From: Trichosphaerium sp. ATCC 40318
Taxonomy: Eukaryota; Protista; Tubulinea
Length of the DNA: 64,000 nucleotides
NCBI GenBank assembly: GCA_038496445.1
Contig: JALMLS010000309.1
Coordinates: 62,001 to 126,000, forward strand
Direction of reading: 5' to 3'
Position 1 is the first letter of the stretch; each line of letters opens with the position of its first letter. A program made the translations under genes and the position numbers. A model generated the notes under the pieces. The model was not told the origin of the DNA and searched no databases. It saw nothing but the letters and a program-made list of their open reading frames with translations. Below, piece after piece: positions 5,686 to 38,141 of this stretch.

Positions 5686-5962
5686 AAAAGCACGAGTTCG
5701 GAAAAGAAAAATAGGGAAAAACAAACACCAAGAATATTGTAATAATTAAAACAAGATTAAAACAGGAAAGTAAACTGGTTAATCTTTTTTACTATTAAGC
5801 AAAACTTTTCAGCAATGTATAGTACTTATCAGAGAGACAACGATTTGAGGTTGTTCGAGTTCTTACAGCATTTCAGCAAGATATTGTTCAACTTTTTAAG
5901 TCAACCTTTCAGTGTTTTTTTTCGTTTATTGCTCAAACACAAAGTATCAAAACAACTCAACA

Positions 5963-7582
5963 ATGGATTTTGTGGGTGTTTCAGTTGAACAAGCGCTTGC
6001 TTACTATCGCGAGAACCGCTCAGAAGCGTTTAATGTCAAAATAACAAAGAACCGCGAGATTTTCATCAAACAGCTTGAAAATGCATTAAAAATCATGAAT
6101 AAAGGCATAACACAACAGCTTGATAAGTTTCTTCTTTTACAAGAACCGAATACTGTCGAAAACATGAAGAATAAACCTGCGTTGCATTGTAAGGATGTCA
6201 CATTGCCAAAAAGCAAACAAACAAGAGAGTACGTTCAAAAAAAGCCTCAGCAATTGACTCAGATTATCGATTTCTTCGAGTTTGGTCACGTGATAAAAAA
6301 TATTATCGAAACGAAAGGTTATCGATAATCTGCGTCAATTCCTCATGCACAATACTGGCAATTGTTTTGTTTGTGCTAATGTTACACAAGGAGTGAACCT
6401 CTGATACGCAAAGAACCAAATATACTTGACTTTCCACCAGAGATTATTTCAAACATTCTATTCGATACAGAAGGAGAAACAAGATTTTCTGTTGCTCAAT
6501 CGTGTCATCTGATGTGTGATATCATTCATGATGTTGTCGGGTATGAAAAGGTGTTTATCAAGGGTGTTTTGGATATTGTAAAGATAAGACAGTACAAGGG
6601 TATCATAAACAATACAGATATTCGAATAATTGGGTTGCAAGATACCATGTATTCATTGCTAGCTGGCGCTCGAAGTATTCACTTAAGGTATTCTCCCCGG
6701 ATTAAAGATAAAGATCTGATAGCATTAGCTGGCGTTCATACCATTTTCTTAAGCCACTGTGCAGATATTACAAATCGTGGTATTAAAGCACTCAAAGGTG
6801 TCCATACAATAGATATTAGTTGTACTTCAGTAACAGATGAGGGTCTTAAAGCACTAAATGGGGTTCACACTATTAATCTTGTCCGTACTTCAGTAACAGA
6901 TGAAGGTATAATGGCGCTCAAAGGAGTTCACACTATTGACCTTAGCCATACTTCAATAACAGATAAGGGTGTTAAAGCACTTAAAGGGGTACACACAATT
7001 AATCTTAACTGTACTCGAGTAACAGATGAAGGAGTTAAAGCACTTAAAGGAGTTCATAATATATTGCTTGGCTGTACTTCAGTAACAGATGAGGGTATTA
7101 AAGCACTAAAAGGAGCCCATACCATCTATCTTAGTAGGACCTCAGTAACAGATGAAGGTATAATGGCACTCAAAGGAGTTCACACTATTGACCTTAGCCA
7201 TACTTCAATAACAGATAAGGGTGTTAAAGCACTTAAAGGGGTTCACACTATTGATCTTCGCTTTACTTCAGTAACAGATGAGGGTGTTAAAGCACTTAAA
7301 GGGGTTCACACTATTAATCTTGTCCGTACTTCAGTAACAGATGAAGGTATAATGGCACTCAAAGGAGTTCACACTATTGACCTTAGCCATACTTCAATAA
7401 CAGATGAAGGAGTTAAAGCACTTGAAAGGGTTCATCACATTTGTTTATCCAGATGTAGATATATAACAGATGAGGGTATCAAAGCGCTCAAAGGCGTTCA
7501 CACCATCATGCTCAAAGGTACTTCAGTTACAAATGAATGTATACAAATGATGAGAGCCAAAGGGGTGTACATAGTACTGTAG
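5963..7582 (+). CDS. F-box/LRR protein, copy A (exons 5963-6228 and 6391-7582)
   Basis: A GTACGT...CAAG intron (6229-6390) joins the two track ORFs in frame. F-box ILDFPPEIISNILF...FSVAQSCHLMCDII, then ~14 LRRs of consensus KGVHTIxLxxTSVTDEGIKAL. Confidence 0.88.
6730..7535 (+). repeat. Tandem array of 66-nt (occasionally 69-nt) LRR-coding modules
   Basis: Recurrent ...acttcagtaacagatga(a/g)gg...aaagcact... framework with a 66-nt period. Confidence 0.95.
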
Positions 7583-8655
7583 TAGAATTATGACATTGTT
7601 ACAAAGACCAATACAAGCAAGTTCTGAATATTTTGACAACTGACTTCAATCTTTTCAGTACGTATGACCAATAAAATAGAAGAGTGTTAACCAGTTTGTT
7701 GACAAAAATGAAAAGGAAAAGCTGTCAATGTCAAAAACTATCTCGTTAATCTCAAAGACCTCAGAGTTGTTTTTGTTCATTACATTGAGTATGTAGTTCG
7801 TTTTAACTGGGAAAAAACCTAGTTGCTTGCTAGCACCTATCTCACCAAATACAAGGTATAGAATAATGAAGTAAACAACTGGATTGGTGTTAATCGTTTT
7901 TATCGAAACAGTGGGTAATCTCCATTGGTAGCATTCCAAAATGTATGAAAGTTCGAACTGACAATTAAGTGTCACATCTTTTGGTTCGATTAATGAAACA
8001 ATAAATGTGAACATGGTACCATAGACATCAGGTTCTAAATATTTTGGTGGCTCTTCAATAGCTCAAGAATGTATGAATTCATAGGCACCTCCTTTTTTAA
8101 CAGTCACCTTTCTTTGTTGATCGGCCTTAAGGCAATGTCAAAAAGCAAAGAATGTTAGGCTAAAATTGTCATATACATGCCTCACGTGATCACTTGGATG
8201 ACTTACGCTTATATATTCATGGCTTATTCGTTGTTTTGCTCTTTCCTTATTCGCTAGATCTAGGTTCTTGTAAATTAACTGATCGTTCACATATTGGCTC
8301 CGTGATGTTTCGTGTAGACTATGTAAACCATTATCGATGTCTATAGTCTATTGGGATGTTATTATCACATGAAGTAACTCGAAGTCTATTCAAGATGTTT
8401 CACACCACGAGATACACTCACTTACTAGAAACGCTCATCTGAGACATTGTAACACGTCATGTAATAAACAGATTTAAGCGTTACAACATCTCTTACAAAA
8501 ATAACATTGTTATATCAAATGTAACATAAAACAAGTTGAAGTCCTAATAATTTTCGGAAGTTCAGAGAATCTCACTTGCACAAGTTTTTTCTCAAATGTA
8601 CTCAAAAGTCGGAATTTCCGATTATTTTTGAACGAATCGACAACCAAGGGAATCA

Positions 8656-11600
8656 ATGCTTAATATATCCTCTATTGTATGTATGGTTATTATAGCGACT
8701 ATTATTACCTGCGAATGCAGGGTATACCATATGAAACCGAACGGAACGGGAAATGGTACCTCAGAAGAATTGTACGGCGCCTTTTCGCTTAGATGTAGGT
8801 TTTATACTCGTTTACTGATTCATGTCAAAAGGGCTGCAGGAAGTTTCAATTCTCTGGCGGTATTAACAGGAGGTGATACTGTACTAGTGTATGGTGGAAA
8901 CTATACGTCTTTTTATAGTTGCTCGTATGATAACACAACAATAACCCCGCTATTGGCATCGTTTAAAGGATCCATAGGGAACCACATCATCATTAAGAAC
9001 AAACCAGGTAACCAAAAGGCGCTAGAGAAAAAACCAAGTATTGAATCGCCTTAAAATGAGTCTACGTGGTACTAATGTTTGTTCTAGGCGAAGAGCCTTG
9101 GTTTTTCCTAGATTTCGAAGATGGTTGCGTAATAAGTACCTTTGACGAGTACCACAACAGGTTTATTTGGGATTGGACGACGTTACACTTTAAAGCTTTG
9201 AGTCACGTAACATTTGAAGGCATTAACCTTGGTTCCAGTATATGTACGCGCGTAAACAGCTCGGGATTTCTGAGGGCAGCATCGCTTTTGACAGTTTCAG
9301 AAATTTCACAATTTTTGAGAAAAAGTGTTTTGAAAAAAATTGCTTGACTGTCGGTACTTTTCCTCAGCATAGCATAAATTACTCGCAAATTAAGTTTTAC
9401 TCCTATAAGTATAGAATCCTATATACATGTTCAAAATAGCAATTTAAGTTTAAGACGGTTCTGAAGTGAGTAAAAACCTCTCAAAGAATTCTATAATTCC
9501 CATAAATATCAAAAATCAACAATTTTATTTTTTTCCAAGAAACAGTCTCAAAAGCGATGCTACCCCGAGAAATAGTTTAAAACTCCAAACAGTATCAAAA
9601 ATGATGCTGCCCCGAGAAATAGTTTTAAACTCCAAACTGAAATATTCTTTTTTTTAAGCTCGAGGCTTCAGCTGTGAAGGATGTGTTGATGTTTTATACA
9701 CAAAATCAAAGTTGCGCAATTGTGGTAGAAATTGTGTGATTATCATGTCTAATTCTGTAAATGTTACACTTAAGGACTTGGATATATTACCAGGAAAAGG
9801 TGAGTCTACAAGAGGATATGGTGTAACATCAAAAACTAATTTTTTGTTTGAAGATTTCGAAATAGAGGGCTTATTTCTTGGAGGTACAGTCAAATATATC
9901 TATCTGTGAACTGTTTATTTATAGTTTTTAAGGTGTCAAGGTGTATGACAATTGTATCAGAACAATGATAATGAATGTATCAGTGTCAAATAGCAACAAA
10001 GATGGCGGATTTGGTATATGGATTACCAACTCATCTTCTACTGTACGTTACATTTCTTTATGTATTGTTTCCATTAGAGTTTGTGCTTACTTGATAGTAG
10101 ATTATACAGGATAATATGCTAGTAAATAACACCAATCAGATAACGTTAGAGCACTACACGCATGACACTGTTATAGAAAGGTATCAAAGCAACTAATACA
10201 AATGACAGAAATACAGCTATTTTTTTTGCTTTTGTTTTTTTTTGTACAACTGCTTTCTTCCTTTCTGAGTACAGGGCATTAATCGTGTTTTTAGGAATGT
10301 AATATCTGGCGGAAATTATGGTATTTTCCAACATTGTCCCGAATGGCATGATTGCTTCGACGACGATTATGAAGATTCCAATAATTATATTACTGAGAAT
10401 ACTCTAATATCAAACAACCTTTTTATAAATATAGCCAACCTGTCAAATAATATTGTGAAACCTGTTGGCGGTGGTGGATTTTATTATAATGTATTTCATA
10501 ACATCTACGATCATAAAGGTCTATTCCCTGGATTTTCTAGATGTTTTGATATACGGAACAACATTTTATCAGGGTATGTTTGTTTATCTTATTTTTTTCT
10601 TACATAATATGACCGGCTACAAAGCCTCTAATTTTTTCTGTTTATTTGTGTTTAAGTATAGCGTGATTACCTATTCTATGCTTATATTAAAACCTGTAGG
10701 GGAACCGTTGATTCAAGTACAGAACTGATATATCTACAGAACTGCAGACATACAATGAGTCATAACAACTTTCACAATGACACAGGCAAATACGGCTATG
10801 ATCTTGGCGTCAACTATAATGTTGATTCAGAATTTATATCTGAAATCACAGAAGATCCATCAAGCACCAGACTTAGTCCATCATCGCCTTTAATATATGC
10901 TGGGATAGGCGTTGTTGAAAAAACAGATTACGAAGGTAATCTACGTAGAAATAGCAATACAACACTAGGTGAGGTTCTTGTCTACTGTGTGAATAGCAGC
11001 TAACTTCAAGTGCCTTTTAGGTCTCTATAGAGAGTGCTTTAACATCGGACAGAGTGACGCTTGCATTACAGTAGGCACATTTGACATAGAGAGGAGAATT
11101 AGCCCAATAGATGGATCAAACATTAATGGTATTTAGGACTACCTTTGTCGGTTTATTTACCGTTTCTGTAGGAACTATCATTATTAATAATGACGCAACG
11201 CTTTCTTTAAATGGATCTGTAATATATGTGTTTACTAATAGTTGTGCTTCATTACAAGGTACAAACCCAGCTATACTTGAAACTATTAATTTGTTAAATT
11301 AAGGAACACTTCAAGTGAGTGCGGATAACTTCATAGAAGACCAGAACTACACTCTCTTGGAATTTCCTAAAGAGTGCGTTATAAGTGTTGAGAATATTAT
11401 TGTCACAAGTGACGACCCTTGTAAACAGCCTGAGCTTAATGTGGTTGGTATGATCAACTCTTTTTCTTTGTGTTTTAAACTAACTTGTTTCTACAGGCTC
11501 ATCATTGGTACTTGCCTTTTCTGCATCAAATAGATGTCAAGAACCCACTAATACAAGCAACTTAGTGTTTGTTATTAGTGGTTCATTGGGAGGCAGTATA

Positions 11601-11735
11601 CTAATTCTAGTTGTGTTGATAATTGTCATTGTTTTAATTTGGCAACCTGAATTCTTATTCCCTCACAGCTTGCGAAACAGGAAAAGATTTACATCGTCCA
11701 ATGATATTGGTACTATAAAAGTAGTAACAGAGTAA
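8656..11735 (+). CDS. Type I membrane protein with right-handed parallel beta-helix (pectin-lyase-like) ectodomain
   Basis: Signal peptide MLNISSIVCMVIIATIITCEC; GGDTVLVYGGNY; Asn/Ile-rich beta-helix-like exons; RLSPSSPLIYAG...DYEGNLR; C-terminal TM ISGSLGGSILILVVLIIVIVLIW and a short tail. Confidence 0.7.
9266..9633. repeat. Foldback-like element inside a long intron: 33-nt arm inverted against two tandem 47-nt units
   Basis: The reverse complement of 9266-9298 (gaaactgtcaaaagcgatgctgccctcagaaat) matches units 9540-9586 and 9587-9633. Confidence 0.6.
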
Positions 11736-12000
11736 AACCTACCGTAATATAATAAAGCCAAGTCACAGAAATAGTGTTGAAATTGTGTCACTACGAATAG
11801 TTCAAAGACTCTGACCGCAAGCATTGTCATAGGTGATGATTATTCTTCTTTTTTTGTGTAGATAATCACGTGACCTGTTGATGTAAGCATAGAAAAAGGC
11901 TCTAAGAGCGTGAATCCATCATCAAGCTGCTCCAACTTTCTACAATAGTCAACCAAATTCACGTGCCTTGTCGTTTGTTTACGCAGTGTTTGGTGAGAAC

Positions 12001-13234
12001 ATGTCTGGATTAAACACGTAAGAAAACGATCAAAACACTTGCTTCGTATGTATTCAGTGCTCAGTATTGTTTATGTTAGGTTCATATCTTTGCTCTTCAC
12101 ATTTGTTCTGGCGCACTCAGCTGCTAGAAACGGTAAGCAGATTAAACGATCGTTCATTTGGATAGTTTAATCTCTAATCGCTTGAATGATGTGTTTAACT
12201 TGCTTATTTACCTGTAGTACTCGATGGGCATGTTCATATTACTGATTTGACAAAATTATCATACACGTGGTACGTAGAGTTGTACAAAATTATCTTATAA
12301 CAGGATTCAGGCAAAAGACCTTACCAAAGCTTGATCACTCGTGGAGTTTGCAAAACTACACTTATGCAATAGATAAAGCTGAAGTGCAGTACGTAGTTTT
12401 CATAACAATAACAAGAATCCTCATAACAGCTATTTATAACAATCTGTGTAGACCCAATGTTGTTGTATTTATAGAGGTATCTGCTGTCAGCACAGATTGG
12501 GAGAAAGAAGTTGAGTGGGTACAAAGTGTAGCAGATGAGAATCCATCTCCTTCTATTGGAGCCATAATTGCCCACGCTCCTATTCAAATGGGGAAACAAG
12601 TCGCTCCAATACTAGACACCTATATTGCAAAGGCACCTCTACTCAGGGGTATACGTCAAGGAGAGGTACAAAGAAGATTTTTGATTCTTTTTGATAGTGT
12701 TAAGTTTTCTTTCATGTTAAGTCAGTGAATTTCTTTAACGACACATCTTTCTTGGAAGGACTTCAAGAACTTGGAAAACGTGGATTATCATTTGACTTAC
12801 TCCTAAGCGATATTAAAAAAGTATTACCAGTTGTAAAATCAGTACCAGGAACACGTTTCATCCTCGATCATATCGGGTCTCCAAAAATAGCACAAAACGA
12901 TTTTGATTCTTGGGCTGAAGATATTTCCTTGCTTGCTAAGTATCCAAATGTGTATTGCAAGGTTTCTGGTGTACCCAGCGAAGCTTCAGGAGGGTCTTAC
13001 GGGAATTGGACAATAGACGAAATACGTCCTTATGTTGTTCACGCAATCAAATCTTTTGGATATGAAAGATGCCTATTTGGTGGAAACTGGTTTTTTTTAA
13101 ATCTTGCGGGAACTTTTGTTCAGTGGTCACATGCTCTAGAATATATTTTGGATAAAGACTTACATGCCACTACAGAAGAAAAGGAGCTTATATATTGGAA
13201 AACTGGTGTAAAAGCATACAATGTAAACGTGTAA
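12001..13234 (+). CDS. Amidohydrolase superfamily protein (Amidohydro_2, sugar-lactonase-like) with predicted signal peptide
   Basis: DGHVH (HxH), LRGIR, GLSFDL, FILDHIGSP, NVYCKVSG and FGYERCLFGGNW motifs. Hydrophobic N-terminus FISLLFTFVLAHSAA. Confidence 0.8.
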
Positions 13235-13393
13235 TGAAAAAAAAGCAAGTTAGCTTTTGATCACAATACAATTCTTTCACCCACAAAAATTGTTGTCTAT
13301 GCCCTTCAGTTATTATCACTTGGAGTGAATAGCCCTTGACCATAAAAAAGTGTTGCTATAAAGTACAATGATTTAATTGTTTGAGCTAAGAGT

Positions 13394-14934
13394 TTATTTT
13401 TGAACATGCTTCATTAAGCTCAGTTCTATAAGACCAGAACGTGGCTCATACCATTTTATATTATTTGTGACTGCATAATCTATAATAGTTGGTCTTATAA
13501 CTACGTTCCCTTCCTGATTTTGACCAACTCCTTGAAAAAAAGTTAAAACAAAACCAATCTTCCGTACAAATCTGCTTTTATTCTTACCTGTAATAACTTT
13601 TAATTTTGGAATTTGTAGCTCTCCTAAAAATATCATGCGTTCTTTAACAAATTCAAGTGCTTCTTGAGGGTGTAAGCCATGAAGGTCTATTTTTTCAAAA
13701 GGTAAATCATAATTTTTTGTAACAAAAATAAACTGTGCAGCATCTGTCATGAGTTTATCTGCTAATAGCGCGGTGGAATGGCCTTCTTTCGCAAACCTTC
13801 TCGCAGAGTTATGATCACCTCTTTTAATAAAATAACTTAGCTACACGTGACCTCATCATAAGTGTCCTGGCTTACCTTACATAACTATCTGAAGCTAAAT
13901 TGAATAACTTGTTTCTTTTCTGTTTAAGACGAACAGCTTTTGTACGATAAAACTGATATATGTCAGATGTAGGTGGAACTTTAGGTATTTCTAATATTGA
14001 TGGTAGATAAGGGTGGGCGTCTAAACCATTAGTTTTGGGAGTAGGAGCGGTTGTTGACTTGTTATTACTTCGAGAACCTAAACAATAAAAACCAAAGTGA
14101 GTTTTTTCAGTGTTTGTTCATGCACGTGCCTTTTTTTGGTTGCACGTGACCTCCTCTATATGCCTTTTGTTCTTTTTTCTTTGGTTTTTCATACCTATAA
14201 AGGTACTCCTCACCTTCTAGCTCAGCAACAATAGCGGCAGCGCAGTCAGACGGATTTTCGTATTGCATCAGTTTGGTACGAAGTGCTTGAGCGTCAACCC
14301 ACGGAAACATTTCTTGAAATGTTTCACATACTTCATCGCTAACTAGTTGGGATATTAACAATAAACAAACCCTCAAAAGCTCCAACAACAGGAGAAAAAA
14401 GGTCAATAGGCAAGTGCATTTTTTTGGATCTTAGCTCTTTTTCTGGAAACGATTTTGTTGGATTGGATAGTACATTTTTGTTCTGGTGGATATGTTGGAT
14501 TAACAACTGGTTCGTCTGCAAGTTTAGGAAAATCTTTTTGTAAGAAAACAGGTGGTTGGTGCCGTGATCCATATTTTAATGTTGTTTGCTGTTTCTGGGC
14601 TGCTGTTTTGGCGAATTCGTGCCAACCTATACCTAACAGTAAGCCTCGAACCGTGCGTTACCGCTACAGACATCCGGACCTTTATTTTGTATTTTAGTCC
14701 GCTTTTTACCGGTTTTGTGTTGTTTTTGCTTTGTAGGCGTTCTGTTGGTGTTAATAAGCGTATATGAGTTGTTTTTGCGTACTTTGGTATTGGTTTGGTA
14801 TCATACTCATCAAAATTCTCTAATAATCTCCTAGCAGCATCGTTAACGTCTGTTGACGCGTTAAGTGCTCTTTGCAATGTGTCATCGGATGCAGACGGAA
14901 AAATAGCCCGTAACATTGCCAAACCATCGTCCAT
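13394..14934 (-). CDS. CUE-CUE-DUF1771-Smr protein (Cue2/N4BP2-like endonuclease)
   Basis: CUE-like LAMLRAIFPSASDDTLQRAL and FQEMFPWVDAQALRTKL; DUF1771-like helix pair; Smr motifs IDLHGLHPQEAL and LKVITG. Start codon uncertain. Confidence 0.8.
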
Positions 14935-15412
14935 ATTACTTTCCAAGCTGTTGATCCAGAACTCGTATGTATTACACAGAAATCAAACGGTCTCGTTATT
15001 TCCAAAAGCAGTGTTTCGTTGAAGGAGTGTCAAAAAGTGCAACTAATGTAAGTCGCGTTCAGCGAAACGTTTTTGTTTGTAACTTACAGCTACATACCAG
15101 CCAATCAATTCTTTGAGTGCATATCCCAATCACATAGAAGTCCCAGACTAAAGGATAATAGGAGGGACATTTAGGCTAGCATAAGATGTGTCTGGCAGGC
15201 CTAACAGGTATGTATTTCACATTCTACTTCTTCCTTTTTAACCACCCTTAATTTAATACTATCAACGTGCACGCAACGAAAAGGTTGTTCACCTAAGCAA
15301 CGCTTTTTTAATATGAAGTCACATTCAACTGTTAACTCTTGAACAGAATGGTTTGGCACAAATAAAAATGGTGAACTACAAACTAGAATAGAAGTATCTG
15401 CATTTTATTTGG

Positions 15413-16738
15413 TTATTGGTATGGAGAAGCTTCAGCATAAGGAGTTTCTGGCCCACCCACTTGAAAAACCAAATAAGTATAAAAGATTTAAAACCTATTA
15501 GCAGTGTACCTGCGGCATCTGCGCTGCTTTGACCTTGCATACCGTTAGCTTGAGGAGCATATACCTGTTCCATTGGTGTGCCGTAAGGAACTGGTTCCTC
15601 AGCTTCTTGATAAGTAGAGGTGTTCATTTGTGGAGAAATAGTAGTTGTAGATTCTGATACAGTTGTTGAACGTCTAAAAAATATCTAAAGAGTTTGAGAT
15701 AAGAAACTAAAAGATAAAAAAAAAAGACAATATGAAAGAAGACAACAGATCGTACCATAAGTATCACAATACTAACCACGAATACAATCACAATAACTAT
15801 GGCTATCGGTATAATATATACGTAGGAAAGTACTCCTGAAGGATAGGGAGAGGGCGAGGGTTGAACAACAGGCTCTTTCAATTCTATATCAAGGCGAGGA
15901 CGTTGTGTCTGTTGTAGTTAATCATCAGAATATTATACTTCCTTTTACATACAGAAAAATCCCAAAAAGCATGGAATATGTGCCTCCTCTTGGAGAGATC
16001 AGGTCTCACAATTATAACAATAGAACTACGGCGGTCGTTCCAAGCTAGAATAAATATAAATAAGGAAAAAAGCGAGAAATCCTAGAAGATTGAAAGAAAA
16101 CGCACATGATTGCTCAACAACTTCTTGCAGTAGTGAATTTGGAATTTTCCACTCATTATCACTTCCGAATAGCCTAGCTTCGTCTATATGATCTACACCT
16201 ATCAATGTGGTGAGAAGCGTTATCTTCTTTTGTCGCATACCTAGGTCGGTATAGTTCCAATTATTTGAAAAATTACTCTCTGTAGAACAAAACCGTGGTG
16301 TTGGGTCTGGCTCTCTTACAATGTTAACAGTAAATGATCTGTCATAAAAGTATGATGGATCTAATGTAAGGATATGTAGTTCTATCCCTATGACCTATAG
16401 AGGGTTTGAAAGTTAGGAGAATCTTTTTTTTGGAGTACCCGAAGTTGATATGGGTTAAAAAAGATTTAGGAAAACAGAGAAAAGTAGTAAACATACATCA
16501 TCATCCCCTGTGATTTGTAAGTTATTGAATCGAAAATAAAGTGAAGCGCTCGAAGGTATATATTCGTTTTCACATTGAGGATTTGTTTGATTTTCCTGCA
16601 TGTATAAAATCGTATCAGCAGTCCGGCTAGTAATTCTGGCAGCTAATAAAGTCAAACAATCTTAAAAGTTTGATCTGTTTTACCGATAACCACTACGCCA
16701 CATAGTATGGCAATACATAAACTTTGTATGTGCATCAT
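15413..16738 (-). CDS. Uncharacterised type I membrane protein with Tyr/Pro-rich cytoplasmic tail
   Basis: Signal-like MMHIQSLCIAILCGVVVI; spliced ectodomain; TM YVYIIPIAIVIVIVFVVSIVILMIFF followed by RR; tail ends PETPYAEASPYQ*. Confidence 0.65.
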
Positions 16739-16883
16739 ATCGATCACGTGTTCTGTAGCCTAACAAACTACCCTTACTTAAATACAAACTTAACTACATC
16801 AAAATGTATTTAACAGATGCTACAGTCAAATCTTGTGAACGTGTGCACTCTTGTTTATTCGCCCAAAGTGAGAGGATGTTACA

Positions 16884-19800
16884 CTATTGTTTTTGATAAG
16901 CTCTGAACCATAGGGCTAAGTACAACGCAATAGAAATCTCGTCAGGTGGATCAATAAAATCTACAAGTAATAAATAATTGTAAAACACAGAGGATAGGAG
17001 TGCTTTGTTCTTACCATGTACATGTAATATACTTGGGATACCTAAAACAGAGATTAGTGAAGAACGAACAACAAGCCCATTACAATTGCTTATCATAAGA
17101 CTTCAAAAACTCGGAGAAAGCAACTGCGATGACGTACCATAGTTTTTGTTTGCAATATCGAACGCTTGATAAAGGTTCTTTGCCTTATCGTTCTAGTGAA
17201 CAAGAATTAGAGCGTTGGTTTATATCACGCGTAAACCACGTGCTTAGAAAACAGTCGTACCGTATTGTATCCATCAAAATTTGCGAAATTATTGTTTAAA
17301 CCGTGTATCAGAGCAAGGAACGCTAAGCCATTATGAAAGCTATCAACAAAATCCTACTTTCGTCAATAATGATCTTAATACTGAAAAAAGTGACTTCTTC
17401 CTAGCTTCAATGAGGACGTACAACAACATCAACACCTTTATATCCTTTAGTACGGTCCCTCACCCAGTGTAGTATAGCTATTCTATCTTTATAACCCTTG
17501 TAAGTCGCAGTCTATTAGCGTCAGTAGTCAGACCAAAAAATAAGAAACAAGAAAAAAGCTCCTGCCTTGAACTCTACAGAGTGAATGATTTGCCAAATAA
17601 CGTTCAACGTAACAACTTCGTGGCCATTAATAAAATCTAAAGCGTAAGCTAATATTATAATATAACAACAGGTGCATGGAATACCTTTAAGATTGCAAGA
17701 AATACTACAATCGAAATGTTTAGATAAAAGAAGCAAAGCACCATTTATATTCTTTGCTTTATCAGAGAAACTCTTTGGTTCCTTAACAGCCAATTTTTCA
17801 TTTTTTCTTGTCACAGCCTATAACGGTGTTATTTTCCAACGTCAGTATTTTACTCTTAATCACTTCTAAACTAAGAAAAAACCAGGAAATTTTGTTCATT
17901 ATTCTGCCTTGCACTAAACGGGCAATACAAGTTTCTCGAAACATGCAGGTAAATTACGGTGACAAGGTAGATGCACAAAGGTTTGTAAAACGCAAAAAAA
18001 CAACTTTTTAAACGATCTATGCTACGTACCATAACAAGGTATAATAGATTTTCTCCAGATGTAAAGTCTTTACAGATATCTTTAATTTGAATATTGACTA
18101 AAGCAAGCTTGGCATTACACCAACCCAAAAACGCCTATTGTAAAACAAAAAGGTAAGCTACAAAATGTATAACTTATTCCTCACCGCTTTTTGTTGAAGT
18201 TTATTTGTGCATGTTCGCTTTGCTATAACGAAAAGAAATGAGTATTCACGTGATAATTTAACCGATAAGCATGGCTTTTCAACGTACCTGGATCAGTACA
18301 ACAAAACTCTAAGTCTGGTTCATCTAAGTAAAACTGATTAATACATGAAAATCATGTAGAAAATCAACAAGCTAAAAGGTACCATCCTTATCGTCGTTCG
18401 AAGACTTAACAGGATCCAATCTAATGACAGGTCGGGAGTAATTTGTTCTATTGTTAGTTTGTGTCATTTTATCCCCAGAGAAATCAACAGTGTATGTATC
18501 AACACCATAGATTCCATGTTTGAGTACAACCTAAAAAACAATAAAATCCCTTAAACATTAAACAATCTTACCTGTGATAATTGGTAAGCATCGTTCAGTA
18601 GAAGGTTTGTGATAACATCATAGTGGTTAAACTCCCAATCACCATCCCTACAAACAATAAGCGCTGACTTTTTGATAACTGTTGTTGGTAGTTCTGCTGT
18701 AAACGCTAAATTCAATGGAGGCTAATTTTACTACGTACTCTCCCAAGCTTTTATTCCATGCACCCCAACACCATCTTTGCTCATTGGACTGGTCTGGAAC
18801 TAATTTGCTTTAATGGCTACTCAAGGAAATACAATAATAAGTCTTACTAATGACCTTCGGGATGTTCCCTTGCCGTACACGATCCTCTAGAAAAAGGTTG
18901 GATTCATGGACTGTTTGTTACAGTACTTACCAGCCACACGTGCTTTTATATTATCCAACACGTCTACATCGATTTCTGAACATGTATTAAAAAACACCGG
19001 CAAGAAAGTACAGTAGTTGTACCATTGCCATTCAAATGAAGAGTCTTGAGGTGCGTATTGTTTAACAGAGCAGTATACAAACGCTTTGCGGCAACCGTAT
19101 TGATCTGAGTGCCTTTGCCATTCGTAAGAAAATCAGCTCGAAAAAAGAAAAGACTCACGTTCCATATTCAATATCCTCAACCCGTCATTCCCAATAAGAG
19201 ATGCTGCAATCCTTGATGCTCCATCCAGCTTAATATTATTATCTAGAAAACATGTAAGCGCGTTTAACAACGAGTAGACATACGAGACAAGTCCAAGTGA
19301 GTCAGAGTGTTGTTTGATTCCAGAAGACTTGCTATAGAATTTGCTCCTCTCTTCGTAATACCATTTGCTATTGAAGGTTAGTATTGAGAAGGCTTCTATG
19401 GTTCTAGTACAAGCAATGTGTAAGAGCTTGAGTGAGTTATTCCATTGTAGACTCTCAGACAAATAAGTGGCACCATCGTTTCCTAGTTTATTCGCTAATC
19501 TTCGTAAGGACACGTGATGTTGTACTATAGTTATTTTTACCATCAAGATGAAGTGTCTCAAGACTCATATTACACTCAAGTGACTTCGCAAGGTATCTCA
19601 CACATGTTTTACTAATAGAGCAACCTAATCATCAGTCAGGCGAGGAAGAACCAGCCATGTAAAAAACTAGCAACTGTTCGTACCTGAAAGTGCTAATGTT
19701 GTCAGGTGACAGTTGTACGATAATCCCCAAGCTATATCTATACACGAACTAATACCCAAACTATGACCTTTGGTTTCCATGAGATAATGGATACAGAGGT

Positions 19801-20139
19801 TTTTTAGGTACCGCTCAACTTTAACGCGAGTAAAGTATCGTTTTTCTTTAAAACGATAGATAGAGCTCTAATATCGCCACTCTCTACGCTAATCTCCTCA
19901 TCTGACACGTGTCAACATAAAAAATGGAAAAATGGAAAGGAACTGGCGTATTTAAGGAGTATGTTACCTGATAGATCAGCTACAGTCTCTGTAAAGAGCG
20001 TGGCAAAGCGTTTCTGATAAAAAACGGTTAGAGTATAAAAACGTTTGTTACATAGCAAACGACGCACCTGGCGTTTTTCGAGGGACTTGGCCGGTGACGA
20101 AACAGCATACTCACCTATGGTTTTGAACCACGACGCCAT
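16884..20139 (-). CDS. Multidomain protein: ribonuclease-inhibitor-like LRRs, WWE domain and tandem calponin-homology (actin-binding) domains
   Basis: RI-type LRRs (NKLGNDGATYLSESLQWNNSLKLLHI); WWE (RWCWGAW...WEFNHYD...YTVDFSGDKMTQTNNRTNYSRPVIR); CH1 (QQKAAFLGWCN...DFTSGENLL...VTLNVIWQII); CH2 (ILHWVRDRTKGY...SFHNGLAFLALIH...PDEISIALYL). In-frame GT-AG joins link the domains. Confidence 0.75.
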
Positions 20140-20481
20140 CTTAGTGCAGAAAGAATTCAGGTACGAAGCCGCTTAATTAATACTTAACATCGCTTATCGT
20201 GCGAGATAACATGTGCAATGAGGATGACTGCTCTCTTAAAAAAGTACAATATTACACGCTTTTTTAGAGTTGCTATTGCCTACATCACTATATGATATGT
20301 GAATACAGAATACGTGAATTCAACTATTCAAAATATGTATGGCTACTATGTCCTCAAGCGTCAAACAATAAAAACGATTTTCAAGAGTATAAATAATTGT
20401 TTTAAAAGTGGAGTGCTTACATAATCTAGCTGTATACATGTTGCACCCCTTTAAGTCCTTTACTAAGGTCAATATCATGTG

Positions 20482-21500
20482 CTCCAGCAAGTGCTTTAAC
20501 ACCTTCGTCGGTTACTAAGGTGCTAGTGGTGAATAGTATGGACTCCAGCAAGTGCTTTAACACCTTCGTCGGTTACTAAGGTGCTAGTGGTGAATAGTAT
20601 GGACTCCAGCAAGTGCTTTAACACCTTCATCTGTTACTGAAGTGTTACATAGGTCAATAGTATGGACTCTAGCAAGTGCTTTAACACCTTCATCTGTTAC
20701 TGAAGTATGGCTAAGATCAATAGTGTGAACCCCTTTTAGTGCTTTAATACCCTCATCTGTTACTGAAGTACGACTAAGCCAGATTGTGTGAATGCCTTTG
20801 AGTGCTTTAATACCCTCATCTGTTACTTCAGTAAGGCGAAGGTCAATATTGTGAACCCCTTTGAGTGCTTTAATACCCTCATCTGTAACATATTTACAGT
20901 CATATAAAGTAATTTCATGAGCCCCTTTGAGTGCCATTATACCTTCATCGGTTACTGAAGTATGGCTAAGATCAATGGTGTGAACCCCTTTTAGTGCTTT
21001 AATACCCTCATCTGTAACATATTTACAGCCACATAAAGTAATTTTATGAGCCCCTTTGAGTGCTTTAATACCCTCATCTGTTACTGAAGTAAAGCGAAGG
21101 TCAATAGTGTGAACCCCTTTGAGTGCCTTAATACCCTCATCTGTTACTGAAGTACGACGAAGCCAGATTGTGTGAATGCCTTTGAGTGCCTTAATACCCT
21201 CATCTGTTACTGAAGTAAAGCGAAGGTCAATAGTGTGAACCCCTTTGAGTGCCTTAATACCCTCATCTGTTACTGAAGTAAAGCGAAGGTCAATAGTGTG
21301 AACCCCTTTGAGTGCCTTAATACCCTCATCTGTTACTGAAGTACGGACAAGGTAGATTGTGTGAACCCCTTTGAGTGCCTTAATACCCTCATCTGTTACT
21401 TCAGTATAGCCAAGATCAATACTGTGGACTCCTTTTAGTGCTTTAATACCCCAATCTGTAATATCTATACAGTTGTTCAAGTTAATGGTATGAACGCCAG
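20482..21500 (-). repeat. Tandem LRR-coding module array of copy B, including 61-nt degenerate units beyond the stop codon
   Basis: 66-nt period, with several identical adjacent units around 21080-21340. A 61-nt duplicated unit starts at 20520 and 20581. Confidence 0.92.
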
Positions 21501-22258
21501 CTAATGCTATCAGATCTTTATCTTTAACATGGGAAGAACATTTTAAGTATTGAGCGCCAGCTAGTAATAAATACATGGTATCTTGCAACCCAATTATTCG
21601 AATATCTGTATTGTTCATGATACCCTTGTACTGTCTTATCTTTACAATATCCAAAACACCCTTGATAAACACCTTTTCATACCCGACAACATCATGAATG
21701 ATATCACACATCAGATGACACGATTGAGCAACAGAAAATCTTGTTTCTCCTTCTGTATCGAATAGAATGTTTGAAATAATCTCTGGTGGAAAGTCAAGTA
21801 TATTTGGTTCTTTACGTATCAGAGGTTCACTCCTTGTGTAACATTAACACAAACAAAACTATTGCCAGTATTGTGTATGAGAATTGACGCAGATTATCGA
21901 TAACCTTTCATTTCGATAATATTTTTTATCACGTGACCAAACTCGAAGAAATCGATAATCTGAGTCAATTCTGAGGCTTTTTTTGAACGTACCCTCTTGT
22001 TTGGTTACTTTTTGGCAATGTGACATCCTTACAATGCAACGCAGGTTTATTCTTCATGTTTTCGACAGTATTCGGTTCTTGTAAAAGAAGAAACTTATCA
22101 AGCTGTTGTGTTATGCCTTTATTCATGATTTTTAATCCGTTTTCAAGCTGTTTGATGAAAATCTCGCGGTTCTTTGTTATTTTGACATTAAACGCTTCTG
22201 AGCGGTTCTCGCGATAGTACGCAAGCGCGTGTTCAACTGAAACACCCACAAAATCCAT
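20584..22258 (-). CDS. F-box/LRR protein, copy B (exons 22258-21993 and 21832-20584)
   Basis: Nearly identical to copy A from the promoter through the F-box, with the same intron. About 15 LRR modules in a different order, ending in a frameshifted module. Confidence 0.85.
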
Positions 22259-22562
22259 TGTTGAGTTGTTTTGATACTTTGTGTTTGAGCAATAAACGAA
22301 AAAACACTGAAAGGTTGACTTAACAGTTGAATATTAAGCCAGTGACAATCAATCTTGTCGTGAATACTAACGTATTGCTTGTGTTAGAACAATAAACGAA
22401 ATGCTGAAACATTGGCTTAAATGTTGATGTATAAGCCAACACCATCAGTAAGTGCCATTGCTTTAACATAATTATTGAGAGAGTTGGCCTGGTAAGAGTT
22501 TTATTATTGTTATTTTACTATTGTTTTTTGTGTTCCTGTTTTTTTCCTTCTTTTTTTTTTAA

Positions 22563-27621
<5,059 letters not shown>

Positions 27622-30939: not shown

Positions 30940-31339
30940 ACGACACAGTTCATCGTCTGTTTTCTGTTCTTAATAAAGAAACTTTTTGGGAGAGTTTCTG
31001 ACCTACTTACAATTGTTCTATCCAATAACTCATTAAATTCTTTCATTCAAGTACTCTCCGGCACACAAGCATAACAGCGGGAGGCCTTATGTGGGGTATT
31101 GTCGAGTTATTTGCGGGAGTTCATACCATTGATCTTGATAGTTGTAAACATATAACAGATGAAGGAATCAAAGCTCTCACTGGCGTTCATACCATTCACA
31201 CTAATTGTACTTCAGTTAGAGATATACAAGCATTTCTTGATCGTTGCAAAACATGAAGAAATAAGCTACAGTGCAAGGAGTTAAAAGGTTAAAAGCTCAT
31301 GGTGCAAAAGTAGCAATATTCCACAAGCTAACTACCTAA
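30940..31339 (+). pseudogene. Deleted, mosaic F-box/LRR pseudogene
   Basis: Homologous to the 5' end (ATG changed to ACG at 30940) and 3' end (...LKAHGAKVAIFHKLTT*) of gene 37470-38141, with deletions and stops. Internal piece reads FAGVHTIDLDSCKHITDEGIKALTGVHTI. Confidence 0.8.
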
Positions 31340-33487
31340 CAATTCTAATAGCAAGTTGCAATAAACATATTATTCAAGTCAACAAAATTAATTAAATAGA
31401 ACATTGACTTTAATGCAGTTGGAATTTTGGTTACGCTCACTGTGGAGCTACTATTCTGGTTTGCTATAACGTTATTGAGTGCTGGTAAGTTGCCCGTTTA
31501 GGTAACCCTAGATGTAGCCTACCATCTTTTTACTAATTTTGTGTACCAAGTTGCCTTCGCAAAGTGCTTTTGAACAGATGAAATGACAATAAAGAGTCTG
31601 TTTATTTTTTGTTGTACAATTTCTTGTCTATGTTGTTTCAGTCTTCATCAACGTATGGACCATCTGTTTGCATAGAGAAGCTGAAATCTTCTGATGAAGG
31701 GGATGGAGAGTCCTCATATGGGGCAGCTGCAATGTTATTTACGGGACTGCGACCAAGACCAAACGAGGCAGGTGAACATCCACATTTGGTAACGATCTTC
31801 TTAGATATCTCTCGGTGCGTATAAAAAAGAATTACACTGATAAGTGCCACATACAAAATACAAAAAGCCTATGTAAAAAGTCATCAATTGAAAAAGATGG
31901 TTTAGGATGAAGACATTTCATCCAATGTAAGAAAAATTGTTCACTTACAGTAATAAGCACAAAAGCAATAATTTTATGTTTCTTCACAACACTTTCACTA
32001 TCTTGATTGAACAAAAGAACACGGTTCTTGTGCACCTTGATTCCTGTAGCTTTCGAAAGTTCATTTAAAGCCTTTGTAAAATATTAGCAAAGACATACAA
32101 AAGAAGGGGTTGAATTGGTTAAAAACTAGAGCAGAAACAATGCATGAAAACTGTAATATTGTTTCAAAATAACTTGTACCTCTTCAGTGCTGTCCAATAA
32201 TAGTGTTGGTATCAGCGATGAACTACTATATAGCCTTGTGCTGTCTGTATTGCCGTCAAACCATTTTTGTATACAGTCGTCATCCTTGTGTTTAAAACAA
32301 CTGTTCTTATTAAATGGCAGAGAATATTGAAATTTAAGCACACAAGTTACAAAAAATCCAACAAGCTCTAAAAAACTAGGTAAGTATTTTGCGTAACATT
32401 AGTACATACAGTGTTATTCATCAACGATGTTCCTGGATTCAATGACACTGGAGCAACGCAATACAATCTATTTACACAACTTCTTACTTTCCCACCGGTA
32501 CATGTCTCTGTTGAGCTGTATCCCCAACTATGCGAGTAATAAGAAACAACTACAATGAACTAATTTCGGAGTTGAAAAACAACTAGCCTCACTGCTACAG
32601 CTTTGGTGTTCATTACTACGTTGGTACTGGTGTGAATCCACAACAGTAATATGATCACCTTGCTTGTAACAGCTTGACAATGTCAAGATGTACATACAAT
32701 GTTGAATTAGTAACAATTTCACTTGGTGTCTCAAAGGTGTAATCAAACCCTGTCTTGAACTTTTCGTTATTTTGTATTTTATCTTTGATTATGTTATCCA
32801 CTATTACCCATCCTAAAACCAAAAAATAAGATCACGATTTGCTGCACGTGCTGCAACAAAAGAAAACTAAAAATTATTCTTGTTTTTTTCGGGTTTTTCA
32901 GTTACCTTCAAAAGTACTCAGCCAATACGTTCTTGCTAAGTAGCTCATTAACCATGCAAGGATCATCATAGTCGCTGTGGCTACTACAAGCGCTCCGAAG
33001 AAAAATAAATGGTGTTTCTTTGGCCCCTGTAGAATGGAAAGAACCATGAACGTCATACCACCTATTACACAGGCTACTAATCCCAAACACAAGCACTAAT
33101 CCAAAATAAGTTTGTGATCATCAAAATAATTAAACGACGCCTATTAATCAACCTATAGAGCGTCTGGTATCGATGGGAACGTGTTTAAACAAAACATACA
33201 ATTACAACCCAACCAGCCGTTCCTTGAGGTTCGCTGATGCTTGAAAGAGCTACAGCTGTACCAATAGCTATCGGTAAAAGCACTGCTGCAATGCAAGCGT
33301 TTAATAAGAGCGAGCCCCGTTCGGAGAGATTATCCAATAGTTTCATGTTGTTTTATTATTGTATAAATAGAGTAGATACGCTTTATACTCAATAAGTAGT
33401 AAAATAACTAACTTTGGGATTATGCATCTTGCAATTTTTTGGATGAACGGCGATTGTACCCGAAAACAGTTGGGGAATATTTAAGGA
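31267..33487. repeat. Left arm of ~2.2-kb inverted repeat (partner 35306-37542)
   Basis: Continuous reverse-complement similarity, with near-identical introns and flanks. Confidence 0.95.
31638..33346 (-). CDS. Four-helix membrane protein with large Cys-containing loop, paralog A
   Basis: Spliced model with three N-terminal hydrophobic segments, a Cys-rich loop (YCVAPV, FFVTC, CFKHKDDDCIQKW), a fourth TM (IIAFVLITAFCILYVALISVILF) and an acidic tail ending YVDED*. Confidence 0.75.
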
Positions 33488-33500
33488 ACATTTTTAAGTC

Positions 33501-33671
33501 ATGTACGAGATGAAGATGTATCAGCACTCTCAGGGGTTTATGATATTAACTTGTGGGGATGCAACCTTATTACAGATGCAGTTGTAGATCCTCTTAAAGG
33601 ATTGCATACAATAAACGCTTGCTATACTCGGATTACAGTACAAGGAATTAAAAGGTTAAAAGCTCATGGTG
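33501..33671 (+). pseudogene. Orphan exact copy of the 3' LRR segment of gene 37470-38141
   Basis: Identical by eye to the reverse complement of 37505-37675. No start codon and no F-box. Confidence 0.85.
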
Positions 33672-33768
33672 TAAAAGTACTACATTTTCACGTGTTGGAA
33701 TTTTGCGTTGATGAGTATTGACTAACAAAGAAAGATCTTGAAGAAAACCAATTTACATCCATCACAAC

Positions 33769-35148
33769 ATGGAGAAGGTAATTAATGTTCCAGAACTCAT
33801 TTTAGCGGTTATGGAGCAAACGAATTGTTTTAAAGCGATAATAGCCTTCTCAAGCAGTCACAAGCATGCTCGTAATGTAATATGTTCACCAGAGTCTGCG
33901 AAACAATTGTTTAAAGCTCAATGGAATAATCCTTTATTTTACGGACCAATTAGCGAATGGCCATCAAAACTTGGAGGTGTTGACAACATCACCGACTTTA
34001 GTGGATTACAATACCTCTACTTTGGGCGACACTTGGAGAAACAGTATCAAGTAAGTCATGTTTTGAAACCTTTTAAGCCCCACGTGTGTGGAATTCGTAA
34101 CACGTGAAATTTTAGAGTATCTGTAAAGTAGAAGATAAAGTTCTTGATATTAATACAGGCGAACTGATTTCTGCATCACCATCAACCTCTGTCGAGTACT
34201 ATTACGGACCTATGTTCGGTACTGAGCCTAGAAAATTCATAGGAAACCGCCGAATAGTTGTTGGTGACGTCGTTCTAATCAGAGAACCAGAAACTTACAC
34301 TGGATTGTGTAAAAAAAGCAATAAACAACTTTGGAAGATACCAAACAAAGGTTATGTGCATGAAATTAGCCATCGAAGTGCTACCATGGTTTTAACAGAT
34401 GGTAACCAGTGGAGGGGTTTACGAAAACGAGAAATGTATGCTGTAAATTTAAAGGATGGTACGACACATGTTTAAACACTTAACAAAAAAGTGAAAATCT
34501 TTACTTTTTTTTGATTCTTCTTGTTTGTATAAAGGTTTGTGTTTAGGTACTACATTATGGTCCAAGGATATAATACATTATTGCTCCTCTGGTGAGACAT
34601 GTTCAATTACACTAGCAGAGAAGTTCATTTGTATTTTGGATGGCCAAACTAAAAACAAAACTGCACTTCTAGATATCAAGAGTGGTAAAGAAGTTGGTGT
34701 ATTGAGTCACCTCGTAAATAAAGTAACTACTACAAGAGAACACATAGTTATGCTCAGTGGTGATTTCATGTACAAATACAAGGAAGACAACAACATATTT
34801 AATCTGGTGTGGAAGATAAAAATCAAGAAAAGTGGAGTTGTTGACGATTATCATTTTTCAAATCAGTCCATCCTATTAGTGACATACAGTGTCCTCTCTG
34901 ACAGTGGTGTTGGTATATGCTTGATTGACAAACATGGGAAGGTCACGTGGGAACACTTTGTAAATTTTGCAGGTGTAGACCATAGCAGATACTGTCATTA
35001 CGCTGCAATTCAAGTAAAAGGAAAGAAAGGAATAATTGTACAGTCAATTGGTTCATGTGCAGTGGTATGTGAATGTATTGGGTGGAATGGTTTCAGAAAA
35101 TGGAGGTTTAACAGAATTCAACATCCCATAGATGAAAAATACAACTAA
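33769..35148 (+). CDS. Uncharacterised protein with degenerate F-box-like N-terminus and PQQ-like beta-propeller repeats
   Basis: N-terminus VINVPELILAVMEQTNCFKAIIAFSSSHKHARNVI; repeated xxWxx blade ends (QLWK, GTTLWS, LVWK, GKVTWE, RKWR); two introns. Confidence 0.6.
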
Positions 35149-35305
35149 CGTCAGTCAAGAAATAATTAACGAAAAAAAACCCCAAAACTTTCAGCAAACA
35201 AAAGTAATGCAGTGTGAAATTGATTGTTTCAAAGAAATCACGTGTTTTTATTTCAAAGATTGCTTTTTAAATTTTGTCGTTTTACGCGTTCCGTTTCTGT
35301 ATCGA

Positions 35306-37542: not shown

Positions 37543-38141
37543 ATCCGAGTATAGCAAGCGTTTATTGTATGCAATCCTTTAAGAGGATCTACAACTGCAT
37601 CTGTAATAAGGTTGCATCCCCACAAGTTAATATCATAAACCCCTGAGAGTGCTGATACATCTTCATCTCGTACATTACTTACACGTGATAAGTTGATTGT
37701 GTGAACTCCAGCAATTGATTGGATACTCTTTCCAGTAAGGTGCTTACATCCTTCAAGATCAATTGTATGAACACCAGCAATACTCGAAATATTTCTTATT
37801 CTTTGGCACCAACGCAATGAAATTGAATGTACACCAGCAAGATTATTTAATACTGTATCTGTTACCTTTTTGTAACCAAAGAAAATTCTTGTGTTTTTCA
37901 GAAGATTCTTGTTTTTATAGAGCATTCGAATGTGATCACGTGATTGTATTGTTATAAAACCATAACCAACGTATTTATAGATTATAGTAGCAAACAACCA
38001 ACATGTTTGAGCAAGATTGAAAGGATTTAACAAGTCATTGGATAGAACAATAGTAAGCAGCTCTACTGGGAGGTCAGTAAGCGAAACTCTTCTCCTATAT
38101 AATATCAATAAAGAACAAATTTAGACGATGTACTGTGTCAT
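37470..38141 (-). CDS. F-box/LRR protein (short form; small first exon ATGACACA, then one intron)
   Basis: F-box SLTDLPVELLTIVL...NLAQTCWLFATII, family linker VGY...LLKNTRI, and AGVHTI-type LRRs. Confidence 0.82.

Follow-up and report, generated by a model that had tools for sequence, protein, structure and literature searches.

A convergent pair of F-box/leucine-rich repeat paralogs with a near-identical 5' tract and diverged tandem-repeat arrays in Trichosphaerium sp. ATCC 40318

We analysed a single stretch of 64 kb from Trichosphaerium sp. ATCC 40318 (contig JALMLS010000309.1, positions 62,001 to 126,000), referred to here as the window, for the structure and evolution of two paralogous genes, A and B, that encode F-box and leucine-rich repeat (LRR) proteins. 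Gene A is on the forward strand and gene B on the reverse strand, so that the two are inverted and convergent. In both, a single phase-2 intron follows the N-terminal exon, and the second exon encodes a divergent F-box, a linker, and 14 to 15 LRRs. Comparisons with paralogs and possible donors cover the genes within this window. With 34-41% G+C and few long open reading frames (ORFs), the window was classed as eukaryotic nuclear DNA with introns. A bacterial (Chlamydiae-like) origin was ruled out by the low ORF density, the spliceosomal intron, and searches of the window that returned neither tRNA genes nor matches to Rfam. The features of the two genes are listed below, with lengths in nucleotides (nt) or amino acids (aa) and with each LRR module represented by the four residues at its xLxx positions (the tetrad).

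5963-6228 and 6391-7582, forward strand: gene A, spliced ORF of 485 aa
5963-6228, forward strand: gene A exon 1, an ORF segment of 88 codons plus 2 nt, with a conserved helical N-terminal domain and then a low-complexity linker
6229-6390, forward strand: gene A intron, 162 nt, GTACGT...AG, phase 2, acceptor AG at 6389-6390
6391-7582, forward strand: gene A exon 2, with the F-box, the linker, LRR0 and 13 modules, a C-terminal cap, and the stop codon
6422-6538, forward strand: gene A F-box, divergent, with its partner in gene B at 21685-21801 on the reverse strand
6665-7579, forward strand: gene A LRR array, LRR0 followed by A1 to A13 (FLSH DISC NLVR DLSH NLNC LLGC YLSR DLSH DLRF NLVR DLSH CLSR MLKG)
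22258-21993 and 21832-20584, reverse strand: gene B, spliced ORF of 504 aa
21993-22258, reverse strand: gene B exon 1, from the ORF and the splice model
21833-21992, reverse strand: gene B intron, 160 nt, donor at 21992 and acceptor at 21833, the same sites as in gene A
20584-21832, reverse strand: gene B exon 2, with the F-box, the linker, LRR0, B1 to B14, a truncated B15, and the stop codon
within 20584-21832, reverse strand: gene B modules B1 to B14 (NLNN DLGY YLVR DLRF DLRF WLRR DLRF TLCG DLSH TLYD DLRL WLSR DLSH DLCN)
5896-6671, forward strand: near-identical 5' tract, with its partner at 22323-21552 on the reverse strand, about 98% identity
20426-20604, reverse strand: 3' end of gene B in decay: a pair of identical frameshifted units of 61 nt (20483-20604), which create the stop, and then a degenerate remnant of the C-terminal cap

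The exon-1 ORF of gene A starts at 5963 and runs to a stop at 6328, and the long ORF that bears the repeats starts downstream. Removal of 6229-6390, a splice predicted from the sequence, restores a single ORF of 485 codons. An apparent frameshift in the exon-1 ORF of gene B was considered as a possible defect and rejected, because the 1-nt deletion responsible sits within the intron. The closest proteins to A and B all come from one Joint Genome Institute (JGI) sample, 3300016894, which derives from the Marine Microbial Eukaryote Transcriptome Sequencing Project (MMETSP). These transcripts of a relative (P0001, P0002/P0121, and P0003) are complete, with 54-57% identity, and they carry the N-terminal domain, the F-box, the linker, and the LRRs in one unbroken ORF that continues over the splice junction. 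The predicted structure of A and B is therefore supported by homology. For the N-terminal domain itself, Pfam gave no family, an Atlas feature search returned scores of 0.70 or less, and a word-indexed search with residues 1-195 of P0001 retrieved the query alone.

The F-box was evaluated with family profiles and with predicted structure. All seven aligned family members match F-box or F-box-like Pfam models (best E = 2.8e-7), and a paralog elsewhere in the window, D, scores 33.7 bits against F-box-like, over the cut-off of 24.3. A profile of the F-box region searched against the PDB placed Legionella AnkB, FBH1, FBXO31, FBXW7, FBXL5, and FBXL17 in its top list, aligned in the F-box register. 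The profile of F-box plus linker matched only 32 of 1.84 billion representative proteins. Seven matches to the F-box part alone (profile positions of about 4 to 60) were scanned; six are Pfam F-box proteins aligned at or beside the annotated F-box, and the seventh is a multi-F-box protein in which the best stretch for Pfam lies elsewhere. An AlphaFold2 model of the gene A exon-2 protein (predicted local distance difference test score, pLDDT, of 91.9; predicted template modelling score, pTM, of 0.84) has three short helices (residues 16-24, 28-35, and 39-49) and, after them, a regular solenoid. The top Foldseek match to this model in the PDB is FBXL2 in complex with SKP1 (6o60_C, E = 8e-15), and FBXL17, COI1, TIR1, and Ralstonia RipG4 are found further down amid generic LRR proteins. 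Because the family profile, the three-helix fold, and the Foldseek matches point the same way, we accept A and B as predicted F-box plus LRR proteins of the FBXL-like type, as the first-pass annotation of this DNA had proposed. By this assignment they are presumed to be substrate receptors of Skp1-cullin-F-box (SCF) ubiquitin ligases; they would bind Skp1 through the F-box and recognise substrates with the variable face of the LRR array.

Both arrays consist of tandem repeats that belong to the LRR_6 type (Pfam E = 2e-37 and 1e-34) and fold, in the model, as a strand/helix solenoid of 15 evenly spaced units with pLDDT above 95, in which each strand comprises positions 4 to 6 of a module. The module had been described as 66 nt long. 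Its length is instead 63 nt, or 21 aa, in 21 full modules, which is also the period reported by Tandem Repeats Finder, and 66 nt is the length only of the Cys-type modules A1, A12, B1, B8, and B10, which have Cys at position 10. The tetrads and their order, by comparison, are exactly as first listed for all 13 modules of A and all 14 of B, and so is the concentration of variability within them. Among the 21 modules of 63 nt, entropy is 1.68, 2.19, and 2.49 bits at positions 6, 8, and 9 and at most 1.17 bits elsewhere. The proportion of nonsynonymous differences (pN) is 0.46 at these positions and 0.083 elsewhere, and its ratio to the proportion of synonymous differences (pS) is 0.75 as against 0.24 for the remaining framework. 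The expected excess of nonsynonymous change at the xLxx positions thus holds in relative terms, and does not extend to a ratio above 1. Positions 6, 8, and 9 are also the most variable across 77 modules from 12 family proteins.

In the LxxLxLxxN register of LRR proteins, the residues x5, x7, and x8 face the concave side of the solenoid. Positions 6, 8, and 9 would correspond to x5, x7, and x8 by mapping from established LRR structure, and the variable residues are found in or just after the predicted beta-strand, which agrees with the earlier placement of these residues on the concave side. The His at module position 3 (GVHTI; at 6737-6739, for example, and then every 63 nt) is invariant in all 21 modules of 63 nt and nearly invariant across the wider set of 77 modules from 12 proteins. 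This residue should build a histidine ladder beside the variable residues of the concave face.

As first noted, the two inverted genes are near-identical upstream, in exon 1, in the intron, and in the F-box. The tract of about 98% identity begins 67 nt before the ATG, runs through exon 1 and the intron, and takes in the F-box and linker; A and B differ in it by 17 substitutions and three 1-nt indels. Seven differences fall in exon 1, six in the intron (including two of the 1-nt indels), and four in exon 2, with no indel in the 547 coding nt that flank the intron. Synonymous divergence is low (pS of 0.044 over codons 1-182) and matches the divergence of the intron (0.037). At about 6672-6810, pS rises abruptly, from 0.044 to 0.15 in LRR0-1 and to 0.43 in modules 2-7 compared by position. 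Nonsynonymous divergence changes at the same place: pN is 0.17 in LRR0-1 and 0.014 upstream, and the replacements cluster at the variable codons (pN/pS of 1.13, not significant). At the 3' ends A and B are barely alignable, and their 3' flanks are not homologous. A break of colinearity had been placed at the start of the array; the discontinuity in divergence is there, whereas the order of the modules is partly colinear and LRR0 and module 1 are positional homologues in the two genes.

Each module was also compared with its best cross-gene partner. Framework pS is 0.19-0.21 by this measure, about five times that of the 5' tract, and Fisher tests of the array against the 5' part gave p = 4e-5 (best partners) and p = 1e-11. 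Since reordering of young copies makes no synonymous differences, the arrays predate the 5' identity. Recent duplication followed by pure reordering is ruled out by this synonymous divergence. Because pS is low in the 5' part and higher in the array, we read the 98% identity as a conversion tract and not as the age of the duplication. The simplest reading of the sequence comparison is that 0.8-0.9 kb at the 5' end were homogenised by recent gene conversion between inverted, older paralogs, in a tract that would end in the first LRRs.

Within each gene the arrays carry the marks of DNA-level turnover. Modules A4 and A8 are identical, as are B4 and B5; A3 and A10 differ by 1 nt, B7 is 1 nt away from B4 and B5, and there are 3 differences between B6 and B12. 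Such pairs, with 0-3 differences per 63 nt, have the within-gene repeat identity that is typical of HNWD-type genes (discussed below). The longest exact matches are 75 nt inside A, 102 nt inside B, and 40 nt between A and B, and the nearest neighbour of a module lies in the same gene for 19 of 26 modules (about 12.6 expected; p of about 0.01). The closest cross-gene pair noted was A9 and B7, which differ at 3 of 63 nt. The order of modules retains a common signal. The global protein alignment of A and B is colinear except for two additional 22-aa modules in B (B8 and B10), the uncommon Arg at position 1 of A12 and B14 falls at equivalent places in it, and alignment of module order by DNA distance does better than 4972 of 5000 permutations of the order in B (99.4%).

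Some exchange may also have taken place. In a tree of framework columns, the subtypes ...EGVKAL and ...EGIMALK join modules of both genes with 96% support in the Shimodaira-Hasegawa-like approximate likelihood ratio test (SH-aLRT), and gene label clusters weakly (5 changes against 7.3 expected, in about 7% of shuffles). The DLSH tetrad is fused to three different second, or framework, halves. On whether modules cluster by type or by gene, the framework subtypes shared by A and B speak for type, and the nearest neighbours, which are mostly intragenic, speak for gene. Unequal exchange or slippage has clearly acted, as seen in the identical modules within genes, the 75-102 nt matches, and a 61-nt duplicate; there is also some mosaicism below the level of the module, and combinatorial shuffling is not supported. 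Overall, an ancestral order appears to have been blurred by intragenic duplication and by some exchange with breakpoints inside modules, and not by free recombination of cassettes.

Arrays in the relative provide a comparison. Its paralogs have only 5-8 modules, none of them DNA-similar to those of A and B (minimum distance 0.19), and the arrays of A and B were therefore expanded recently. P0002 and P0121 (L002) are more than 90% identical and differ by a 43-aa insertion that amounts to exactly two LRR modules. These two sequences could represent two alleles, paralogs of recent origin, or variants of the assembly, and the indel would show that such events also happen in another species. The most direct trace of turnover is at the end of gene B, where the array stops prematurely at GVHTIHH* and out-of-frame remnants of modules follow. 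The 61-nt unit found here is a module with a 2-nt deletion, present as two exact copies at the stop. An exact duplicate that is out of frame and extends past the stop indicates that tandem duplication is recent and blind to reading frame. Gene B has lost its C-terminal cap to this frameshifted unit and may be decaying.

Three further family members are encoded in the window, all of them intronless:

37470-38108, reverse strand: paralog C, F-box-like plus 5 LRRs, 212 aa
51155-52075, forward strand: paralog D, F-box-like plus LRRs, 306 aa
52907-54079, reverse strand: paralog E, F-box-like plus LRRs, 390 aa

A second F-box/LRR pair in convergent, tail-to-tail orientation consists of paralogs D and E, which lie about 0.8 kb apart and do not have the N-terminal domain of A and B. 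Fragments of LRR genes at 31032-31256 and 33398-33721 (both on the forward strand) lie at or inside an inverted repeat at 31267-37542, as does paralog C, and the C-terminal end of paralog C (MWGCNLITDAVVDPLKGLHTINACYTRITVQGIKRLKAHG...) is found a second time in an ORF at 33551-33721. Here too, then, F-box/LRR genes are tied to an inverted duplication. The 13-kb interval between A and B contains amidohydrolase and Smr-domain genes. Searches with tblastn found no LRR cassettes from 7.6 to 20.5 kb and none beside A or B, and the other matches in the window were to paralogs C, D, and E or to fragments of gene C. Just past gene B, at 24250-25500 on the reverse strand, are Helicase_C ORFs and a P-loop segment with weak matches to nSTAND3 and AAA_22; these ORFs are probably parts of a helicase or NTPase gene that contains introns. 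In the public sequencing runs X1 and X5, the segment that holds the last modules of gene B (20513-20725) has very high summed contig depth with many differing flanks, and many other family members carry the framework of the gene B end at 90% DNA identity or more. A family alignment retrieved no DNA-level relatives from metagenome or viral contigs, and the exact DNA pattern of the LRR module had no match in metagenome contigs.

Taking these results together, we consider it reasonably probable (about 0.65) that A and B are clustered members of a lineage-specific, FBXL-like family whose arrays change by repeat duplication and loss and by gene conversion, with the 5' identity left by a conversion tract. 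Both genes have a single intron and combine a family-specific helical domain at the N-terminus with a divergent F-box and, after a conserved linker of roughly 50 aa, a solenoid of 21/22-aa LRRs. The arrays of A and B would descend from a single ancestral array in which unequal sister-chromatid exchange or replication slippage duplicated and deleted blocks of one to four modules within each gene, a process that would still be active and would ignore the reading frame. Occasional exchange would have placed breakpoints inside modules, amino-acid replacement would have focused on the three exposed positions (x5, x7, and x8 of LxxLxLxx), and recent conversion would have homogenised the 5' 0.8 kb, intron included, between the inverted copies. 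Several points weigh against this account. The gene models, including the intron, are predictions supported by homology to the transcripts of the relative, and the order of modules is that of the assembly. Taken by itself, the F-box of A and B gives a Pfam E-value of 0.012, which falls short of the cut-off. The 5' part contributes just five synonymous differences, so that its pS is built on small counts. The intermediate pS of LRR0-1 and the multi-nucleotide replacements at its variable codons fit patchy conversion or selection equally well, and diverged modules imported from other loci into young copies would likewise raise the divergence of the arrays.

That last point leads to an alternative close to the first-pass annotation, in which A and B are young duplicates, about 2% diverged, whose arrays were rapidly rebuilt by module exchange among the family, giving combinatorial degradation specificities under diversifying selection. 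We consider this unlikely. The tetrads DLSH, DLRF, xLVR, and xLSR are indeed common to both genes, and the similarity of A9 to B7, the framework subtypes that cross genes with weak clustering by gene label, and the three second halves of DLSH all agree with exchange; combinatorial shuffling of recent duplicates is nevertheless contradicted by an order conserved past chance, by nearest neighbours that are mainly intragenic, and by a longest A-B match of 40 nt. The rise of pN from the 5' part to LRR0-1 would fit rapid rebuilding, whereas a best-partner pS of about 0.2 is more than shuffling of young copies alone can supply. Similarly, replacements are focused at the exposed positions as diversifying selection would have it, but pN/pS at the variable codons stays below 1 and close pairs of modules show no preferential difference there. 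The two-module indel between P0002 and P0121 speaks for mobility of modules, and none of the paralogs in the window (C, D, and E) is similar enough to have been a donor. A second alternative, neutral birth and death, reduces the pattern to repeat instability, with gene B decaying and the diversity of tetrads reflecting relaxed constraint on the surface and no repertoire function. The frameshifted unit that truncates gene B was duplicated again out of frame, and the process is therefore mutational and not selected. The fragments of LRR genes elsewhere in the window and pN/pS values put below 1 everywhere (the value of 1.13 for LRR0-1 not being significant) also favour neutrality. It is improbable as a full account, since pN/pS, at 0.32 for the 5' part and 0.24 for the framework, indicates purifying selection, the spliced ORFs of 485 and 504 codons are intact, and complete ORFs of the homologues are expressed in the relative.

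Two further explanations concern how the arrays came to be read or made as they are. Misassembly of a 63-nt repeat that is 80-100% identical could lie behind the apparent order of the modules, their identity in some cases, or the duplicated 61-nt unit. Long exact internal repeats invite such errors, and contigs from public runs (60-400 nt, many of them from other family members, with 14% of the sampled locus words in the best run) break inside the arrays with many alternative joints. We find an artefact very improbable, as both arrays keep their reading frame for more than 280 codons and retain gene-specific variants, the order in A and B is partly colinear, and the window is contiguous through its 64 kb. 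The idea that arrays are rewritten in each cell from donor cassettes, in the manner of the variable lymphocyte receptors (VLRs) of lampreys, draws on the modular LRR design and nothing further, and we give it almost no credence: both germline genes are complete, the interval between them holds amidohydrolase and Smr genes in place of cassettes, and the other LRR matches are whole paralogs or gene C fragments in the inverted repeat. The analogy with VLRs does not hold for the features that define them.

Comparison with known systems helps to place the family described by our preferred reading. FBXL-type proteins such as SKP2, FBXL2, and FBXL17, and plant TIR1 and COI1, likewise have an N-terminal three-helix F-box followed by a solenoid of xxTDxGlxxL repeats (LRR_6, or Cys-containing). 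Genes A and B differ from them in having repeats of 21/22 aa rather than about 26, a divergent F-box without the conserved Trp and under the Pfam cut-off, an additional family-specific N-terminal domain and GY-x-V linker, and repeats that are near-identical in DNA. Lamprey and hagfish VLRs are built from an incomplete germline gene and hundreds of flanking cassettes by deaminase-driven somatic assembly, and their products are secreted or anchored by glycosylphosphatidylinositol (GPI). A conserved LRR framework and variable residues on the concave face are shared with A and B, in which none of the testable VLR features was seen. Plant LRR resistance clusters, of the nucleotide-binding LRR (NLR) and Cf types, resemble A and B in their clustered paralogs, in unequal crossing-over and gene conversion, and in variation of the solvent-exposed xxLxLxx residues; these proteins have NB-ARC or receptor parts where A and B have an F-box, and their repeats are far less DNA-similar.

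Expanded F-box families offer a second set of comparisons. Work by Thomas in 2006 reportedly provides an example of expanded, fast-evolving F-box families in nematodes and plants. Expansion of these families with fast evolution of the substrate domains has been described, for example, among wild isolates of C. elegans (PMC8120010). Like A and B, these families form lineage-specific clusters in which the F-box is conserved and the substrate domain changes rapidly, and a role in immunity has been proposed for them. Their substrate domains are FTH, FBA, or Kelch and change chiefly through point substitutions and the gain and loss of genes, whereas A and B have a homogeneous LRR array subject to repeat turnover. 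F-box/LRR expansions are also known from amoeba-associated Chlamydiae and giant viruses (PMC4209131, PMC5753266). These, and the GALA/RipG proteins of Ralstonia, are large birth-and-death families of F-box and LRR genes, and the LRR of RipG4 is among the fold matches of A; they are effectors of symbionts or pathogens, unlike A and B, which are nuclear, have a spliceosomal intron, and lie among housekeeping genes. The conceptually closest described system is the HNWD family of Podospora (het-d/het-e), grouped here with the strongly conserved repeats found in NLR-like proteins of fungi; its WD repeats undergo concerted evolution, differ in number, and have positively selected surface residues (Paoletti et al., 2007; PMC1805685). 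Both systems have tandem repeats that are similar in DNA and vary in number, hypervariable residues on the surface that makes the interaction, and an N-terminal effector part that stays constant. The HNWD repeats are WD40 on STAND NTPases (signal transduction ATPases with numerous domains), with interlocus exchange and dN/dS above 1; in A and B the repeats are LRRs on F-box proteins, exchange is weak, and pN/pS at the variable sites is 0.75.

We conclude that A and B represent ordinary, if fast, tandem-repeat evolution of a gene family and not an assembled receptor system of the lamprey type. They document an F-box/LRR subfamily that is specific to one little-sampled lineage of marine protists, with LRR arrays that are unusually homogeneous in DNA and appear to be turning over now, and they illustrate that a sharp boundary of identity can reflect a conversion tract and not rapid shuffling. 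It is doubtful, and we treat it as a low-probability hypothesis, that the family serves as a germline repertoire for intracellular recognition that uses SCF degradation against viruses or intracellular bacteria. The convergent pairs A/B, and perhaps D/E, would then be units of diversification, in which conversion fixes the F-box end while unequal exchange or inversion-mediated swapping renews the binding face. The family is nonetheless well suited to the question whether expanded ubiquitin-ligase adaptors serve innate recognition in protists, as has been proposed for nematodes and plants, and genes A and B may be the LRR counterpart of the WD, ANK, and TPR repeat-shuffling systems of fungi.

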